A stretch of 30,656 nucleotides of DNA from Prasinococcaceae sp. CCMP 1430 (lineage: Eukaryota > Plantae > Prasinodermophyta). The notes beneath the pieces were generated by a model that worked only from the letters and a program-made list of their open reading frames with translations, had not been told where the DNA came from and searched no databases. Shown here piece after piece: positions 4,901 through 23,727 of this stretch (positions are counted from its first letter, which is position 1; every line of letters starts with the position of its first letter). The stretch spans positions 232,536-263,191 of the forward strand of contig RQSC01000005.1 of assembly GCA_013416795.1 (NCBI GenBank). Direction: 5' to 3'. A program made the translations under genes and the position numbers.

Positions 4901-7862
4901 ACCTCGTGGAAGAGGGCGCGGCCGTACTGGCGAGCCGTGTGGTCTCCCTCGAACGATCCGAATCGTCGCTCCGGAGGCGCATGGCAGAGGCTGCGAGGGC
5001 CGCCGCCGCGGCGGCGGCGAGCGCGGCCCCCGGCGAGGATGAGCTGGAGGCTGCCGCTGCCCAGGTCGAGGCGATGGCGGCGATGGAGGTTGAGCTCACG
5101 GAGCTTCGCGCACGCGTGGCGGAATTCGAGGCTCGAGGAAGCCCCGTGGCGAACGGCGACGCTGGTCACCACGCCGACGCGCCCGAGCCGCTCAGCGAGG
5201 AGCCCGTCGCCGCGGCCTCGCCCATGCTGCGCGCGATCACGCATGCCAACGGCCGCACGCCCACCAAGATGCCCGCCCACACGGCTGCGCGCGAGCTCGA
5301 CGAGCTGCGATCTGAGAATGCCTCGCTGGTGTCGCGGCTCGATGAGGCCGTGGAGGCGGCACGCCTGGCCGAGGAGGCGGCGCACAGTATGTCCGCGCCG
5401 ACGATGCACGCCCAAGAGATCGCGGAGCGCAAGGCGATTGAGCTCGAGGTCGAGTGCGACACGCTGCGCACGCGCCGCGATGCCCTCGAGGCCGAGCTCA
5501 GCGCGGCTCAGAGCCGATTGGCCTCCGCAACCTCGGAGCGCGACGAGGCCCACGCCAAGCTCCGCGAGGCGCGGACCGCTGCGGAGGCGATGCGGATAGA
5601 GCGCGATGGCGTGACCTCCGAGCTCGAGGACGTCAAGGATGCGCTGGCGTCGTCCAAAGCGAGGGCCGCCGAGGAGCAGGGAGGTTTTTCTCAACAGGCT
5701 GCGTCCGCCGCCGCCGAGGCAGAGGAGCTGAGGGCGCGAGTTGCCCAGCTCGAGGGCAGGGACGCAGACGCATCGAGAGTCGAGGCCCAGCTTCTGGAGC
5801 TCAGCGTTGAGCACAATGCCCTGAAGGCCGAATTCGAGTCGGCCGCGGAGGCGTCCGTGGCGGAGGCTGACACGCTCACTGCCGAGCGCGATGCTTCGCA
5901 CGCGGAGCGGGACAAGCTGGCGGCCAAGCTTGCGGAGGTGGAGCGCGCCTCCGCCGCAGCCTCGAGCAACAGTCGCGAGGAGACGGCTGAGGCTCGGGCC
6001 GCCGCCAAGCTCGCAGAGGAGCGCGCGGCCGAGCGCGAGGGCACCGTGGCTGAGCTGGAGACGCGCGTGGGCGAGCTGAACGACGAGCTCGCGGGCGTGA
6101 CCAGCCGCCTCGAGGAAGTTCTGGAGGCACAGCGCACTTCGGACAGCGCCGCTACCGACGCGCGCGATGCGCTGCAGGCCTCCGTCGTCGAGATCTCCGA
6201 AGAGCGCGATGGCCTCCGGGCGAGGCTGACCGAGCTCGAGGGACTGCTCGCGGCCGAGGAGGCGCGCAGCGCGCAACGGAGCGCCGACGCCGAGGCAGCG
6301 GAGGGTGAGACCGCCGATCTGCTCGAGTCTGAGCGCGAGCGCGCTGACGCGCTTCAGGCGCGGCTCGCCGAAGCGGAGGCCAGCGTCGCCGCCGCCGCCG
6401 AGGAGCGGGTGGGGCTCAAGGCAATGCTTGAAGCCGAGAGGGACCACGCAGAGTCGCGAGCTGCAAAGCTCGAGGCCGACCTCCGAGACGCCGAGGCCAC
6501 GCTCTCCAGCGAACGCGACGGGTGGCGCAAGAAGCGCGCCGCCGCTGATGAGGCGTCCGCAAAGCTCGAGGCGCTTACGATGAGCGAGCAGATCCTGCGA
6601 ACGGAATGCGACGACCTCAGGGGCAAGCTCGACGCAGCCGAGGCCGACGTCCAGAGCGCTCGAGAGAGGGCAGAGGCTGCCGCGGCCAACGATTCGATCG
6701 CTGCGGAGGAACGCAAGAGCGCAGCCGCTGCGGCCGAGCGGGCTACGGCCGATGCGCGAGACGAGGCCGCCGCACTGCGCGCGGCGCTCGCTCGCGCCGA
6801 GCGCGCTGAATCGGCCGCACGCGAGGACGGCGAGCGGCTGCAGACCGAGCGCAATGAGCTCGCGAGCGAAAGCGACAGGCTCCGTGCCGAGGTCGACGCG
6901 CTCAGGACTCAAACGGACGCCGATGCGGACGCGGCGGGGACGATGAGGTGCGTCTTCGAGCGAGCGCGCCGACGCGCGTGCGTTGCGGGCGCGCGCCGGC
7001 GCGTTTCTGCGCGCGCGCGGCGCGTTGACGGTTTCTGCGCGCGCCCGCTCGCCCTTAACAGCCGCGAGCTGGCAGCCCTCAGGAGGGAAAAGGAGGAGAC
7101 CGCTGCCGCGCTGAAGGCTGAGATTGCGGCCGCCACAGCCGCTGCAGAGGCAGCCAAGGAGGAGGCCGCATCCGCCGAGCGCGCGGCGGAGCTCGCGCGC
7201 GCTGAGACTGTGGCGGTCGAGAAGGAGGCCAAGGCGGCGGTGGAGGCGGCAGCGCTCGCGAACAGGTGCGTCCGCGTGTCGCCATGTTGCGCGATGGGCT
7301 CGATGAGGCCGTGTGGTGTCGCGTGCGAACTGACTGTGGCGCCGACGGACGCCTCCTCCCCCCCCCCTCCGCCCCCCCCCCCCCCCCCAATCCCCCTCGT
7401 GGGCGCTCGCTCGCTCTGGTGTCAACGTCGCGACTGCGTAGCGGTGACGTCGACCTGGAGGTCGAAATCGAGTCCCTCCGCCGTGACCTCGCCGCTGCAG
7501 AGCGACGCGAGGAGGAGCTGGAGGAGGAGCTGGCGGGGGCGCGCGACGCGCTCGACGGCAAAGGTGGGGGCGAGGCTTCGGCGGACAAGCTCGCGCTGGA
7601 GGCGGAGGTGCGCGAGTTGCGCGCGGCCAACGCCGACCTCACCACCAAGCTCGCATCGACGGCGAGCAAGTCGGCCGGTGGCGCCGGCGATGCGGCGCGC
7701 GTGCAAGCGGCGGAGGCCGCGCGCAAAGACGCCGAGGCCGCCGCGGCCAAGGCCAGGACGGAGACCGAGGAGGCGCAGGCCTCCGTTCGCGAGCTGCAGG
7801 TGGAGCTCGTGACCAGCCAAGAATTGTACGCCAAATTGCTCAACTCAATCAACAACATGTAG
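1933..7862 (+). CDS. Large protein with N-terminal NT-C2 (EEIG1/EHBP1-type C2) domain, low-complexity linker and long coiled-coil; exons 1933..6947, 7062..7265, 7442..7862; first exon unresolved (about 1500-1620)
   Basis: Acceptor ccctAG at 1931-1932, with a CTGAC upstream, opens GGSRAKHSGVSIINARTGECSWPNPVEYEITLYQDKSGNLEKKELELALV...FDASEY, which resembles NT-C2. About 1,300 aa of A/E/L/R heptad-rich sequence follow. Removing introns 6948..7061 (GTGCG..AACAG) and 7266..7441 (GTGCG..CGTAG) gives a continuous coiled-coil ending at TAG 7860-7862. Confidence 0.8.
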
Positions 7863-11598: not shown

Positions 11599-13413
11599 TC
11601 AGGGGTCCTGATAGATCAGCGGGGTGTAATCGGGGTCCCACTGCATCTCGCGAATGCGTTTGCGCATGCCGCACTCCCCCAGGCGCACCAGGTCGTCCAC
11701 CTTGAGGCCGCGGCCGCCCTCGGCGATGCCCTCCTCGATGGCCGTCAGCGCGACCGCCACGCCAATCTCGCGGCTGATCTCGCGGATGTTCTCAATGCGC
11801 GGGAAAATGCGCCCGCACTTGAGCACCTCCTCGGGCACGAGGTCGGCGAGCTTGATGGCTGCGGCAAGGAGCATGCCGTCGCTCACCTGCGTGGCGCCGC
11901 ACGCGAGCGCGCCCAGCCCCACTCCCGGGAAGAGGTACATGTTGTTGCCCTGGTTGGCGATGACGGGGAAGCCGTTGTGCTCCATCGGTGGGTTCTCGAA
12001 GGGCGACCCGCTGGCGAAGATGCAGCGGCCGCCGGTCGCTCTGAAGGCCGCCTCCGCGGTGCACTCGGCGCGGTCCGTGGGATTGCTCATGGGCATGATC
12101 GTCGGGCGCTCCGTGCTCTCGGCCATCGCCTGGAGCACGTCGGCGGTGAAGATCCCGCCCACGCCCGAAAGCCCCAAGAGGATCGTGGGCTTGACCTTCC
12201 GGATGGTCTCGGTGAGCGACATGCCATCCTCCAGGTCGTCGCGGGCGAATCCCCAGACCGCATCGGAGAGCCCCTCGCGCGAGGCGCCGATGAGGCCGTC
12301 CTTGTCGAGCATGTAGATGTTTCTTCGCGCGGCGGCGCACGCGCCCTTGCCGCCGCCGAGCATCTTCGCCACCGCCTGCACCACCATGGCCGCCACGCCG
12401 GTGCCCGCCGACCCCGCGCCCGCGAACACTATCTTCTCCTTCACCAGGTCTCCGGGGCTCAGGCCGCGCGCGCGCAGCGAGGCGAGCATCCCCGCGAGCG
12501 CCACCCCGGCGGTGCCCTGGATGTCGTCGTTGAACATGAGGCAGCTGCCCCTGTACCTGTTGAGCAGCCTGAGCGCGTGGCGCGTCTGGAAGTCCTCGAA
12601 CTGGACCAGGCAGTTGGGCCACCGGTTGTAGACGGCGTCCATGAACGCGTCGACCACGCGCAGGTAGGCGTCGCCCTCGAGGCGCGGCTGGTGCAGGCCG
12701 ACGTACTGCGGGTCCGCCCGCAGCTCCTCGTTGTTCGTGCCGACGTCGAGCACGCACGGCAGCACGCGGCTGGGCTGGATGCCGGCGCCCGCCACGTACA
12801 GGTCCAGCTTGCCGATGCACACGCCGATGCCTTGGATGCCGAGGTCGCCCAGGCCGAGCACGCGGGAGCCGTCGGTGACGACGATGATGTCGACGTCCTC
12901 GGCGGGCCAGTTGTACGTGATGGCGGGGAAGTCGGCGACGTCGTGCGCGGAGAAGTAGAGGCCGCGCGGCCGGCGGAAGAGCTCGGAGTATCGCTTGCAG
13001 GCCTCGCCGACCGTGGGCGTGTAGATGATGGGCGCCATCTCCTCGATGTTTTCGGTGACGATTTTGTAGTACAGGGTCTCGTTGCGCTCGAGCAGCGACC
13101 GGAGCTGCTTCCACTTCTGGAGCGGGTCTTTGCGCGCGTCGAACGCGTGGCGGAAGCGCTGGACCTGGGAGTCGATGGGCATCTGCCGCGGCGGCAGCAG
13201 GCCGCGCAGGCCCAGCCGGTCGCGCTCGCGCTGGGGGAAGGCCATGCCCTTGTTGTACCAAGGGTCGTGCAGCAGCTCGGCGCCGCGCTTGGTGACCACC
13301 TCCGTCGCCAGCGTCGGCAGGCCCTTCGACTTGGACTTGCGGTCCTGGGCGGCGGACGGCCCCGCGCGCGCGTCCTCGTCCCGCTCGCGGGCGGCCGTCC
13401 CCGGCGCGCGCTG
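11599..13413 (-). CDS. NAD-ME: Malic enzyme, most like plant mitochondrial NAD-ME; 5' end in gap
   Basis: LLHDPWYNKGMAFPQRERDRLGLRGLLPP, IIYTPTVGEAC, VTDGSRVLGLGDLG, GKLDLYVAGAGI, LDVGTNN, QFEDF, FNDDIQGTAGV, GAGSAGTG, PMSNPT..AEC, NQGNNMYLFPG. TGA at 11601-11599. The HDPW and KLDLYVA motifs favour the NAD-ME clade. Confidence 0.93.
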   Translation of the reverse strand, partial: QRAPGTAARERDEDARAGPSAAQDRKSKSKGLPTLATEVVTKRGAELLHDPWYNKGMAFPQRERDRLGLRGLLPPRQMPIDSQVQRFRHAFDARKDPLQKWKQLRSLLERNETLYYKIVTENIEEMAPIIYTPTVGEACKRYSELFRRPRGLYFSAHDVADFPAITYNWPAEDVDIIVVTDGSRVLGLGDLGIQGIGVCIGKLDLYVAGAGIQPSRVLPCVLDVGTNNEELRADPQYVGLHQPRLEGDAYLRVVDAFMDAVYNRWPNCLVQFEDFQTRHALRLLNRYRGSCLMFNDDIQGTAGVALAGMLASLRARGLSPGDLVKEKIVFAGAGSAGTGVAAMVVQAVAKMLGGGKGACAAARRNIYMLDKDGLIGASREGLSDAVWGFARDDLEDGMSLTETIRKVKPTILLGLSGVGGIFTADVLQAMAESTERPTIMPMSNPTDRAECTAEAAFRATGGRCIFASGSPFENPPMEHNGFPVIANQGNNMYLFPGVGLGALACGATQVSDGMLLAAAIKLADLVPEEVLKCGRIFPRIENIREISREIGVAVALTAIEEGIAEGGRGLKVDDLVRLGECGMRKRIREMQWDPDYTPLIYQDP

Positions 13414-15013: not shown

Positions 15014-15996
15014 TGAGTGGGCGTCCTCTTCTATAGGAGTAGTGCCCAGGTGGAGCTGCAGCAGGCCATGTTGCGCCTCCGCGTTTACTGTTACCACTGC
15101 CTGTAGGAAGCCCCAAACAAATTAGACCATGCTTCGACCCACCCGCGAGTGCCCCCCCCCAAGGGCCCCTGTGGCACCCCGCAGCGCGTGTTCGTGGTAA
15201 AGGCCGGCGAGGTGGGCATGCGTGGGCCAGGCGCACAGCGCGTGGGGGGGGGGTCTCCGTGGGCATATTTCGTGCGAGTTCGGCTAAAACCCTACCCAAA
15301 ACAACCCGAAATGGCCAAAATTGTTTTGAGATTGCACCAGGGCCGCCGCGCAGGTGCTGAAGGCGGGCCGGAGGCACTCCTTCTCTTCTGCGCGGAGCAG
15401 GGGGGGCGAGGGCTGTGGTGGGGTTGTGCCATCGTCGTCATCATCTGGAGGCGTCGGGGTGAGGGAAACCAAGCATTTCGTTACATAAATTACGCGATAC
15501 CAAGTATTTCGGGCATTATTCAAATTGCCAACATTTAGACGCCAATTGACTCTGTCCGGGCGCGGAGGGCGGAGATGTGGGAGCGGGAGCGGGGGAATAG
15601 CTTGCGCGTGTCGGCAGCGGAGTGCGTGACCTCTCGCGGGCGGCGTCGCGCAGGTGTGCGAGCGCAGAGCACGCTCGTTGTGCTCCCGCATGCGGCGCAC
15701 GCGAGTAAGAAGAAGTCGTTCCACTCAGCCGCGGTGGTTGTGTTCTCACGCGCGGAACGCGCGATGCAGTAAATTGTTCTTCTCAAAGCCCCCATAATGA
15801 CGGTGGGAAGGGAGGGAGGGCGCGTGAGTGAGTGAGGGTTAGTGTTGCCCACGGCGCGCGCTCTGGTGTGCGCGTAATAGCGCGGCGGCGATTGCGCGCG
15901 CGCGGTGAGTCGGTTGGCGCCGGGTCTTCTCGTCCGGTTGGGTGGTGTGTGTGGCACACTGATGAGCTCAAATTTTGACGATCCTGCGTGGTTTGT

Positions 15997-16136
15997 GTGG
16001 CCGTAGTTTAAAATCCGCTTGTACCAGAGCAGGTTAGCTATGTGGTTAGAATCTCTCGTTGTGGGCACGTTCGACGTAGACGTATCCGAGAAGACCCGGG
16101 CTCGACTTTTCAATTACGAGATTCCCGGCGGCCACA
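15997..16136 (+). tRNA. trnH-GUG: tRNA-His(GUG) with three introns; exons 15997-16010, 16042-16064, 16086-16106, 16123-16136
   Basis: The spliced product GTGGCCG TA GTTT AGTGGTTA GAAT C TCTCG TTGTGGC CGAGA AGAC CCGGG CTCGACT CCCGG CGGCCAC A is 72 nt, with a 7/7 acceptor stem, 5/5 anticodon stem, 5/5 T-stem and a GTTT/GAAT D-stem. Anticodon GTG, A73, no encoded G-1, and C54, as in plant cytosolic tRNA-His. Followed by a T6 run. Confidence 0.9.
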
Positions 16137-16139
16137 GAA

Positions 16140-16145
16140 TTTTTT
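16140..16145 (+). terminator. RNA polymerase III terminator (T6)
   Basis: TTTTTT begins 4 nt after the tRNA discriminator base. Confidence 0.75.
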
Positions 16146-16320
16146 GCTCGGATCCGCAACTTTTTTGCATTACTTTGACCTGTAACCATGCATTTCACGA
16201 AATTATGACATTTATTTCACGGAATTATAATACGAAGCGGATTCCGTTGGAATCCCATTATATCTGTGAATCCGAAGGGAACCCACGGTTCCCCGACGCA
16301 CCTTTCCCGCTGTTTTCCGA

Positions 16321-16378: not shown

Positions 16379-16785
16379 GTTTACGGTACTTTTTGGAATT
16401 ACTGTACTGTACGAATCCACACCAGACCCTACATTGGGTCAAACCGTAAGTGCACACGTGGCGCGCCCTCGGCTTGGCGTGTGATCTTCATCCTCGCCAC
16501 GCGCAAGGGCGGGCGGGCGGGCGGGCGAGGGGGGGGTGTGCGGGCGAGCGTGCGCCAATGTAGTCCGCTCGCCGTCCGCTCTCAGCGCCACACGGGCGCG
16601 GCGCGGGCGCGCGGGGAGCCGAGCGCCCCCCCTCTTTGTCCGGAGCGCGCGCCCCGCGCGCGCGCTGCCGCTCCCGCGCGGCCGCGGCGCGCAGGCGCGC
16701 CCGACGCGGCGCCCTGCTGCAGGCCCTTCCCTTCCCAGTCCCCTCCAGCGCCTGACCGCCGCGCTCGCGCGCGTTGTCAGCCGCC

Positions 16786-23353: not shown

Positions 23354-23412
23354 AGCTTTTTGAAAGCGGTGGGGATGGTTTCCTGGGACCCTATATCTTT
23401 TTAACCCTAAAT

Positions 23413-23464
23413 GTTAGAATATCATGTTGTGGCCGTGATGACCCAGGCTCTTTGTTGGCAGCCA
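23413..23464 (+). pseudogene. Intron-less tRNA-His-like remnant
   Basis: GTTAGAATATCATGTTGTGGCCGTGATGACCCAGGCTC matches the spliced tRNA-His at 32/38. The anticodon stem TCATG/CGTGA still pairs around TTGTGGC. The T-arm is damaged, TGGCAGCCA resembles the 3' end, and the 5' acceptor strand is missing. Confidence 0.6.
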
Positions 23465-23727
23465 ACCCGAACGACCGACCCCGTTCGCATGCCTTATCCA
23501 TGAGCAGAACGTGCGCAATCGCGAACGAAGTCGCCCGTGTCTTGTATATACGTGTATTTTGATATACTATCCTGGTGACACTCATCAGTGCGCCGCCGAT
23601 TGCCTGTGCGTCGTGCGTTCCCGGCGCGCCACACAGCGCCGCCGCGCGGCGTCCGCCGCCGCTCTGGGGGCGCGGCGCGCGCGCAGCGAGAGGGGAGGGG
23701 GTGGAGGGTGCCCGGGCTTCGGAGCGG

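Follow-up and report, generated by a model that had tools for sequence, protein, structure and literature searches.

Gene structure and genomic setting

The window, by which we mean the whole stretch of DNA that was analysed (30,656 nt), has a GC content of approximately 70% and contains five N gaps. Within a region of about 1.7 kb where the GC content is lower, the forward strand carries a predicted tRNA-His gene at positions 15997-16136 that is interrupted by three introns. The tRNA gene is flanked by a two-exon CCDC90-like gene on one side and a WDR3-like gene on the other, with genes for malic enzyme and EPSP synthase farther away. A malic enzyme fragment from the window was identical at 604 of 604 positions to PRCOL_00003953 of Prasinoderma coloniale (EukProt EP00793) and, judged by this sequence match, the host genome is that of P. 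coloniale, a marine green alga. The genome paper of this species reports a GC content of 69.8% and does not discuss nuclear tRNA genes. The tRNA gene consists of the following parts:

15997..16010, forward strand: exon 1, 14 nt; acceptor 5′ strand, U8, A9, D-stem 5′ strand and A14
16011..16041, forward strand: intron 1, 31 nt; D-loop position 14/15, relaxed bulge-helix-bulge (BHB) motif of type HBh′
16042..16064, forward strand: exon 2, 23 nt; 3′ part of the D-loop, D-stem 3′ strand, anticodon stem 5′ strand and anticodon loop to G37, anticodon GTG
16065..16085, forward strand: intron 2, 21 nt; canonical position 37/38, weak BHB-like motif
16086..16106, forward strand: exon 3, 21 nt; C38, anticodon stem 3′ strand, variable loop, T-stem 5′ strand and T-loop C54-C59
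16107..16122, forward strand: intron 3, 16 nt; T-loop position 59/60, relaxed BHB motif of type hBH
16123..16136, forward strand: exon 4, 14 nt; U60, T-stem 3′ strand, acceptor 3′ strand and discriminator A73; CCA is not encoded

A first-pass annotation of this DNA had proposed that removing these three introns leaves a complete tRNA. We found its coordinates to be correct: the four exons add up to 14 + 23 + 21 + 14 = 72 nt, and ARAGORN calls the product as tRNA-His(GTG). The stems, which had been described as fully paired, form 21 of 21 cloverleaf pairs, with the wobbles G10·U25 and U13·G22 occurring as in plant tRNA-His. The predicted spliced junctions read GUUUA/GUGG, GUGG/CCGA and CGAC/UCCC (the slash marks the splice), and the anticodon stem of the product, UCUCG/CGAGA, is diagnostic of the locus.

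Standard scans had been expected to miss the gene, and the unspliced locus is indeed invisible to ARAGORN and Rfam. Neither ARAGORN nor Rfam at gathering thresholds found an RNA gene in the whole window, and a search of positions 15900-16250 against Rfam with a permissive E-value found no tRNA. When only intron 2 was retained, ARAGORN still found the gene and reported a 21-nt intron. When intron 1 or intron 3 was retained, it found no gene.

Identity of the spliced product

To place the spliced product, we compared it with a reference set obtained with a relaxed metagenome pattern, which yielded 120 loci, all of them intronless plant-type tRNA-His genes, with 135 copies in total. The product aligned to these copies without gaps and was identical at 61-62 of 72 positions. 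Eleven positions differ from the commonest intronless form. Eight of them make up four double, fully compensatory pair changes in the acceptor, anticodon and T stems, and the other three sit at unpaired, variable positions. At the columns that are invariant among the intronless forms, the spliced product agrees in 38 of 40 cases, and conserved sequence is recreated at all three junctions. The relaxed pattern that gave this set was built on exon 2, and its matches included no intron-bearing relatives. A metagenome scan with the exact exon 2 pattern gave no match, and the spurious ORFs over the locus retrieved no contigs when used as protein queries.

The identity elements point in the same direction. 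The anticodon is GUG, the anticodon loop UUGUGGC is identical to that of green-lineage tRNA-His, position 73 is A, and the base at position −1 is T, so that G-1 is not encoded. As far as the sequence tells, A73, the non-encoded G-1 and the lack of an encoded CCA mark a cytosolic eukaryotic tRNA-His. In plant small-RNA tables, a matching 5′ end carries an extra 5′ G, as expected for a G-1 that is added post-transcriptionally. This suggests that the matching plant small RNAs are tRNA-His fragments, which is our reading and is not stated by the source papers.

The T-loop of the spliced product opens with C54 instead of the near-universal T54. We considered and rejected this as a defect, because every intronless green-lineage tRNA-His that looks intact, with at least 20 of 21 stem pairs, has C54 (23 of 23 distinct forms). 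The T-arm of one of these forms, L028, with T-loop CTCGACT, is identical to that of the spliced product, and both CTCGACT and CTCGATT were found among the intronless relatives. An intronless tRNA-His was also observed on the minus strand of a 68.8-kb scaffold of another marine eukaryote (L050, TARA_B110000977), about 9.1 kb in; its acceptor stem is different (GATCTCG) and its T-loop reads CTCGATT. This gene indicates that the C54 type occurs widely and that the organism in question has an uninterrupted tRNA-His.

Splice motifs

The first-pass annotation had assigned BHB geometry to every junction. This holds for introns 1 and 3, where the central helix is paired at four of four positions in exact register and the motifs are of the relaxed types HBh′ and hBH, not the strict hBHBh′; intron 2 fits only loosely, with three of four pairs.

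In intron 1, the pairing of A9-G10-U11-U12 with an intronic AGCU is complete as claimed (4/4, one G·U), and the AGCU ends two bases before the 3′ cut. The inner helix at 16012-20/16027-35 was likewise found as described, with nine pairs and one mismatch. The bulges UA/A and AU/G (the slash marks the cut) are 3 nt each and the outer helix h is absent, which makes the motif HBh′. The local minimum free energy (MFE) structure is this BHB fold, at −6.8 kcal/mol. In intron 3, C54-G57 (CTCG) forms the proposed four Watson-Crick pairs out of four with CGAG, flanked by the T-stem. Here the 5-bp T-stem serves as h, AUU forms the 3′ bulge, a loop opens on the 5′ side and there is almost no h′, which makes the motif hBH. 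Again the local MFE structure is the BHB fold, at −8.4 kcal/mol.

The claimed three of four central pairs of intron 2 are present. The intron lacks the anticodon-intron pair of canonical 37/38 introns, with U32 facing U16083, 3 nt before the 3′ splice site. Its BHB register has −3.4 kcal/mol versus −8.4 kcal/mol for another local fold, and is therefore not the local MFE structure. A loose BHB fit is usual for introns at this position.

None of the three motifs overlaps another, and the fold of the whole precursor contains the acceptor stem as well as the motifs of introns 1 and 3. Because the central helix of intron 1 occupies the 5′ strand of the D-stem, the D-arm cannot form before intron 1 is removed.

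Comparison with chance expectation

We examined how readily such a gene is found in comparable DNA with a BHB-first scanner that is blind to tRNAs and lists segments whose removal fits BHB geometry. The four-base exon segment that stops two bases short of the 5′ cut had to pair with the four-base intron segment that stops two bases short of the 3′ cut, this helix had to be flanked by 3-nt bulges, and either the outer or the inner helix had to be at least 4 bp long, or both at least 2 bp. Candidate segments were removed singly and in pairs, after which ARAGORN was run with canonical introns allowed. As controls, we used 42 strands, of which two were reversed and 40 were Markov-simulated.

Applied to both strands of the window, the scan recovered the tRNA-His gene with exactly 16011-16041 and 16107-16122 removed, and ARAGORN added the 21-nt intron itself. 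The control strands gave 39 long-armed loci (about 0.9 per strand), and only one tRNA of at most 76 nt was found in all 42. Since the scan recovers exactly this gene, versus one in 42 control strands with a tRNA of that size, the pattern exceeds chance. Among arbitrary junctions, about 2% (138 of approximately 6,570) have a central helix with four of four pairs. Other matches of the pipeline in the window (at 12630, 16599, 22217 and 1662) were rejected, as their products are 91-93 nt long, lie mostly in coding DNA and appear at the false-positive rate of the controls.

Candidate flanking transcription signals

Both the A and the B promoter box of the gene are split by introns, and for this reason we propose transcription from an upstream element. 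The following candidate signals flank the gene:

15966..15981, forward strand: upstream TATA-like block with AAATTTT at 15970-15976 (−27 to −21), candidate TFIIIB/TBP site
16140..16145, forward strand: T6 run, candidate Pol III terminator, 4 nt past the 3′ end of the gene
16161..16166, forward strand: second T6 run, candidate backup terminator, 25 nt past the 3′ end of the gene

The AAATTTT motif is one of only 17 A/T runs of at least 7 nt in 28 kb of DNA with 70% GC, and we infer from its sequence and position that this block may act as the promoter. Runs of six or more T are rarer still: the forward strand of the window (28 kb) has only two, both just downstream of the gene.

Conservation in a natural relative

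The second exon of the CCDC90-like gene, 68 residues long, was used for an exact look-up, which identified a Tara Oceans contig (L145) that ends just past the tRNA. Relative to the window, its coding DNA is about 98% identical and the tRNA flanks are about 91% identical (8.9% differing). At positions 1798-1940, this contig has a tRNA-His gene with all three introns, the spliced form of which is called tRNA-His by ARAGORN. The mature tRNA differs at one of 72 positions (C5 to T, leaving a T·G pair), where about six differences are expected from the rate in the flanks. Exon 2 is the same. The signals around the gene are also largely kept: the TATA-like block differs at one of 16 columns and the next 15 nt at four of 15, and both T6 runs are retained.

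The introns differ in how far they have changed. Intron 2 is identical in L145 (21 of 21), and intron 3 differs at two bases, both in the loop. Intron 1 (16011-16041, versus L145:1811-1844) differs at 16 of 34 aligned columns, well above the 8.9% in the flanks; it turns over faster than its surroundings. In L145 this intron is 34 nt long and lies at 13/14, one nucleotide off the 14/15 junction of the window, with A14 coming from the 3′ side. Its central helix (H) is paired at four of four positions and is accompanied by an 8-bp h′; the nearest-neighbour MFE structure leaves out H. Three neighbouring registers formally pass the BHB filter, of which 13/14 alone brings back the universal A14 and gives the same mature tRNA. 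The first-pass annotation had held that a lack of conserved BHB pairings in relatives would weaken its proposed mechanism, and in L145, one close relative, the pairings are kept. In a more distant relative, whose malic enzyme is 73% and WDR3 51% identical, no tRNA-His was found beside either of these genes, and the gene order also differs.

Intron 3 of the window contains TTCAATT at 16109-16115, a perfect match to the T-loop consensus; the corresponding sequence in L145 is TTCGTTT. This match is probably a coincidence and not a hidden T-loop or B-box. A model with two mini-introns, in which TTCAATT is kept as the T-loop, was rejected because it has no BHB support and because the motif is destroyed in L145.

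A second tRNA-His gene

A second tRNA-His(GUG) gene is present at positions 7088-7211 of another contig (L144) from the same Tara population as L145, with an identical copy in L154, around position 1516. This paralog has a 31-nt D-loop intron after AGUG and a 21-nt T-loop intron at 55/56, and has none at 37/38. Both of its central helices have four of four pairs in exact register, and a T9 run lies downstream. At the homologous site in the window (23404-23475, forward strand), only the middle exon and the T-loop intron remain, while the first exon, the 3′ exon and the T-run have been lost. By its sequence, this copy is dead in the sequenced strain, a decayed remnant, and the gene under study is intact.

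With the relatives at hand, the ends of the introns can be compared. All three introns in the window end in AT, as had been observed before, but this does not hold as a rule, as AG and AA endings occur in the relatives. All six introns compared have A as the first base of the 3′ bulge, namely introns 1-3 of the window (AU/G, AU/C, AU/U), intron 1 of L145 (AG/A) and introns A and B of L144 (AU/G, AA/C). The 5′ bulges of the same six introns show no pattern. This sample is small and its members are non-independent, with intron 3 of the window and its L145 copy counted as the same.

Interpretation and alternative explanations

We consider it very probable that the locus is a functional nuclear gene, in four exons, for the cytosolic tRNA-His(GUG) of P. 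coloniale. This interpretation is supported at the sequence level by the near-identity of the spliced product to intronless green-lineage tRNA-His with compensatory changes, by the exact BHB register at two ectopic junctions and by conservation in a natural relative.

We propose that RNA polymerase III would transcribe a single precursor from the TATA-like element to the T6 runs. Introns 1 and 3 each fold independently into a relaxed BHB motif, and a tRNA splicing endonuclease would cut after the second base of each bulge, regardless of position in the cloverleaf, with the exons then being joined by a tRNA ligase. Intron 2 would probably be the last to leave, when folding of the D-arm and T-arm gives the enzyme a mature body to measure from. 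To finish the tRNA, the ends would be trimmed, CCA added, and G-1 attached opposite A73 by Thg1. An endonuclease that reads the motif and an ordered removal, both also suggested in the first-pass annotation, are proposed by analogy with Cyanidioschyzon merolae.

It is unlikely that the gene is real and is processed at other junctions or by another route, with the T-loop cut at 60/61 or at 56-58 (CUCGAUU), or with the introns leaving in a different order or in none. The order of processing given above is purely our deduction, and cuts at 59/60 and 60/61 yield the identical product. Both CTCGACT and CTCGATT occur in intronless relatives, and neighbouring registers of intron 1 in L145 formally pass the BHB filter. 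However, 59/60 is the only T-loop register in which both cuts fall after the second base of a 3-nt bulge beside a helix with four of four pairs, and only 13/14 in L145 gives back A14 and an unchanged mature tRNA.

Very unlikely, in our judgement, is a decaying tRNA-His pseudogene with three insertions, with the working tRNA-His encoded elsewhere. The remnant at 23404-23475 demonstrates that tRNA-His copies can die in this genome, but this true remnant looks different, as its exons are lost and no T-run is left, while the gene under study has all 21 stem pairs intact, including four compensatory changes. Comparison with L145 likewise argues against decay: the exons differ at one of 72 positions versus 8.9% in the flanks, the exact BHB register is kept even though about half of intron 1 has changed, and the terminators and the TATA-like block are conserved. 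A chance cloverleaf, obtained from GC-rich intergenic DNA by choosing three segments, is effectively refuted, since the false positives of the BHB-plus-ARAGORN pipeline (about 0.9 long-armed loci per control strand, and one of normal length in 42) stand against a gap-free 85% identity to genuine tRNA-His with compensatory changes, the unique T6 runs of the window directly downstream, and an ortholog in a natural relative.

Going beyond the single functional gene in four exons that we favour, we tentatively raise the possibility that the BHB tRNA introns of Prasinoderma, a member of the green lineage, form a genome-wide system that is still active, an extension that we hold to be somewhat doubtful at present. 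Three observations lead to it: between natural populations, junctions slide by a single nucleotide with no change in the mature tRNA, intron bodies change several times faster than neutral flanks while the motif is kept, and paralogs of the same tRNA carry non-overlapping sets of introns. If true, intron gain, loss or replacement would be ongoing, and a position-independent endonuclease may be ancestral to Archaeplastida and not a red-algal oddity.

Relation to known systems

The closest known system is the red alga C. merolae. Reports on this species (Soma et al. 2013, PMC3728597; PMC9602550) describe 27 nuclear tRNA genes with introns of 11-69 nt, three of which have three introns. The introns lie in the D-loop, at 37/38 and in the T-loop, and their motifs range from strict to relaxed BHB. 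RT-PCR showed that the genes are spliced, with the 37/38 intron leaving last and the order following motif stability. The nearest precedent is tRNA-Ile(UAU), whose three introns interrupt the D-arm, position 37/38 and the T-loop; the gene described here likewise has three short introns (16-31 nt). Both 14/15 and 59/60, the ectopic positions used here, are among those recorded in C. merolae. Further shared features are the independently folding motifs, the split A and B boxes, an upstream TATA-like element and a downstream T-stretch, as well as the weakest BHB motif being at 37/38, where the class with three of four pairs is also known. Unlike C. merolae, a red alga in which splicing was demonstrated, the host here belongs to the Prasinodermophyta in the green lineage, the tRNA species is another one, and splicing is predicted from the DNA sequence. 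Two observations made here, the slide of a junction by 1 nt between close relatives and the non-overlapping intron sets in paralogs of one tRNA, were not found in the sections consulted of the C. merolae reports.

Another red alga, Chondrus crispus, has nuclear tRNA genes with validated introns in the D-loop (20/21) or T-loop (58/59) (PlantRNA 2.0, bioRxiv 10.1101/2021.12.21.473619). These resemble the present gene in being ectopic D- and T-loop introns in a eukaryotic nucleus, sometimes combined with the canonical intron, and in being missed by tRNAscan-type tools. In C. crispus the position within each loop is fixed and no gene has more than two introns, whereas here we find 14/15, 13/14, a second D-loop site, 55/56 and 59/60, and three introns in one gene.

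With the multi-intron tRNA genes of archaea (Thermoproteales and others, cut by EndA), the present gene shares the 4-bp helix with two 3-nt bulges, each cut after its second base, and the independence of position. It differs from them in being eukaryotic and nuclear, with CCA and G-1 not encoded, with A73 and with Pol III-type signals, and the enzyme would be a Sen2/Sen34-type complex. Permuted tRNA genes occur in Ostreococcus and Micromonas as well as in the nucleomorph of Bigelowiella (Maruyama et al. 2010, reviewed in PMC3978253). They have in common with the gene studied here the green lineage, processing by way of a BHB-like motif and an AT-rich upstream region, but they are circularly permuted, mostly at 37/38, while the present gene is collinear with ectopic introns. 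According to the same review (PMC3978253), green algae have permuted genes and almost no tRNA genes with ectopic introns. A 2026 review does not include a Prasinoderma case among those it lists, and our literature search found no report of such a multi-intron layout in the green plant lineage.

So far, experimental evidence for nuclear tRNA genes that carry several ectopic BHB introns comes only from red algae. What is new is that this multi-intron layout, known in red algae, is now found in a new major lineage. As the Prasinodermophyta split before Chlorophyta and Streptophyta, the gene bears on the question of whether position-independent tRNA splicing is ancestral to Archaeplastida. For annotation, it means that the tRNA set of this genome is unreadable with standard tools. 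The Tara ortholog, in which the intron has largely changed and its junction has moved by one base while the motif and the mature tRNA were kept, offers a natural system for studying intron evolution.

Neighbouring assembly features

Two observations concern the DNA around the gene. A segment of about 227 nt in the window (15333-15559) is missing from the Tara contigs L145 and L150, and represents an intergenic indel upstream of the tRNA gene. Directly upstream of the WDR3-like gene, positions 16500-16700 form a 200-nt stretch with 80-89% GC. The WDR3-like gene is also found in Tara contigs L121 and L144, both of which start just upstream of it, with leaders of 46 and 124 nt, right after the end of this stretch. 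The GC-rich stretch probably marks a break in coverage or assembly.
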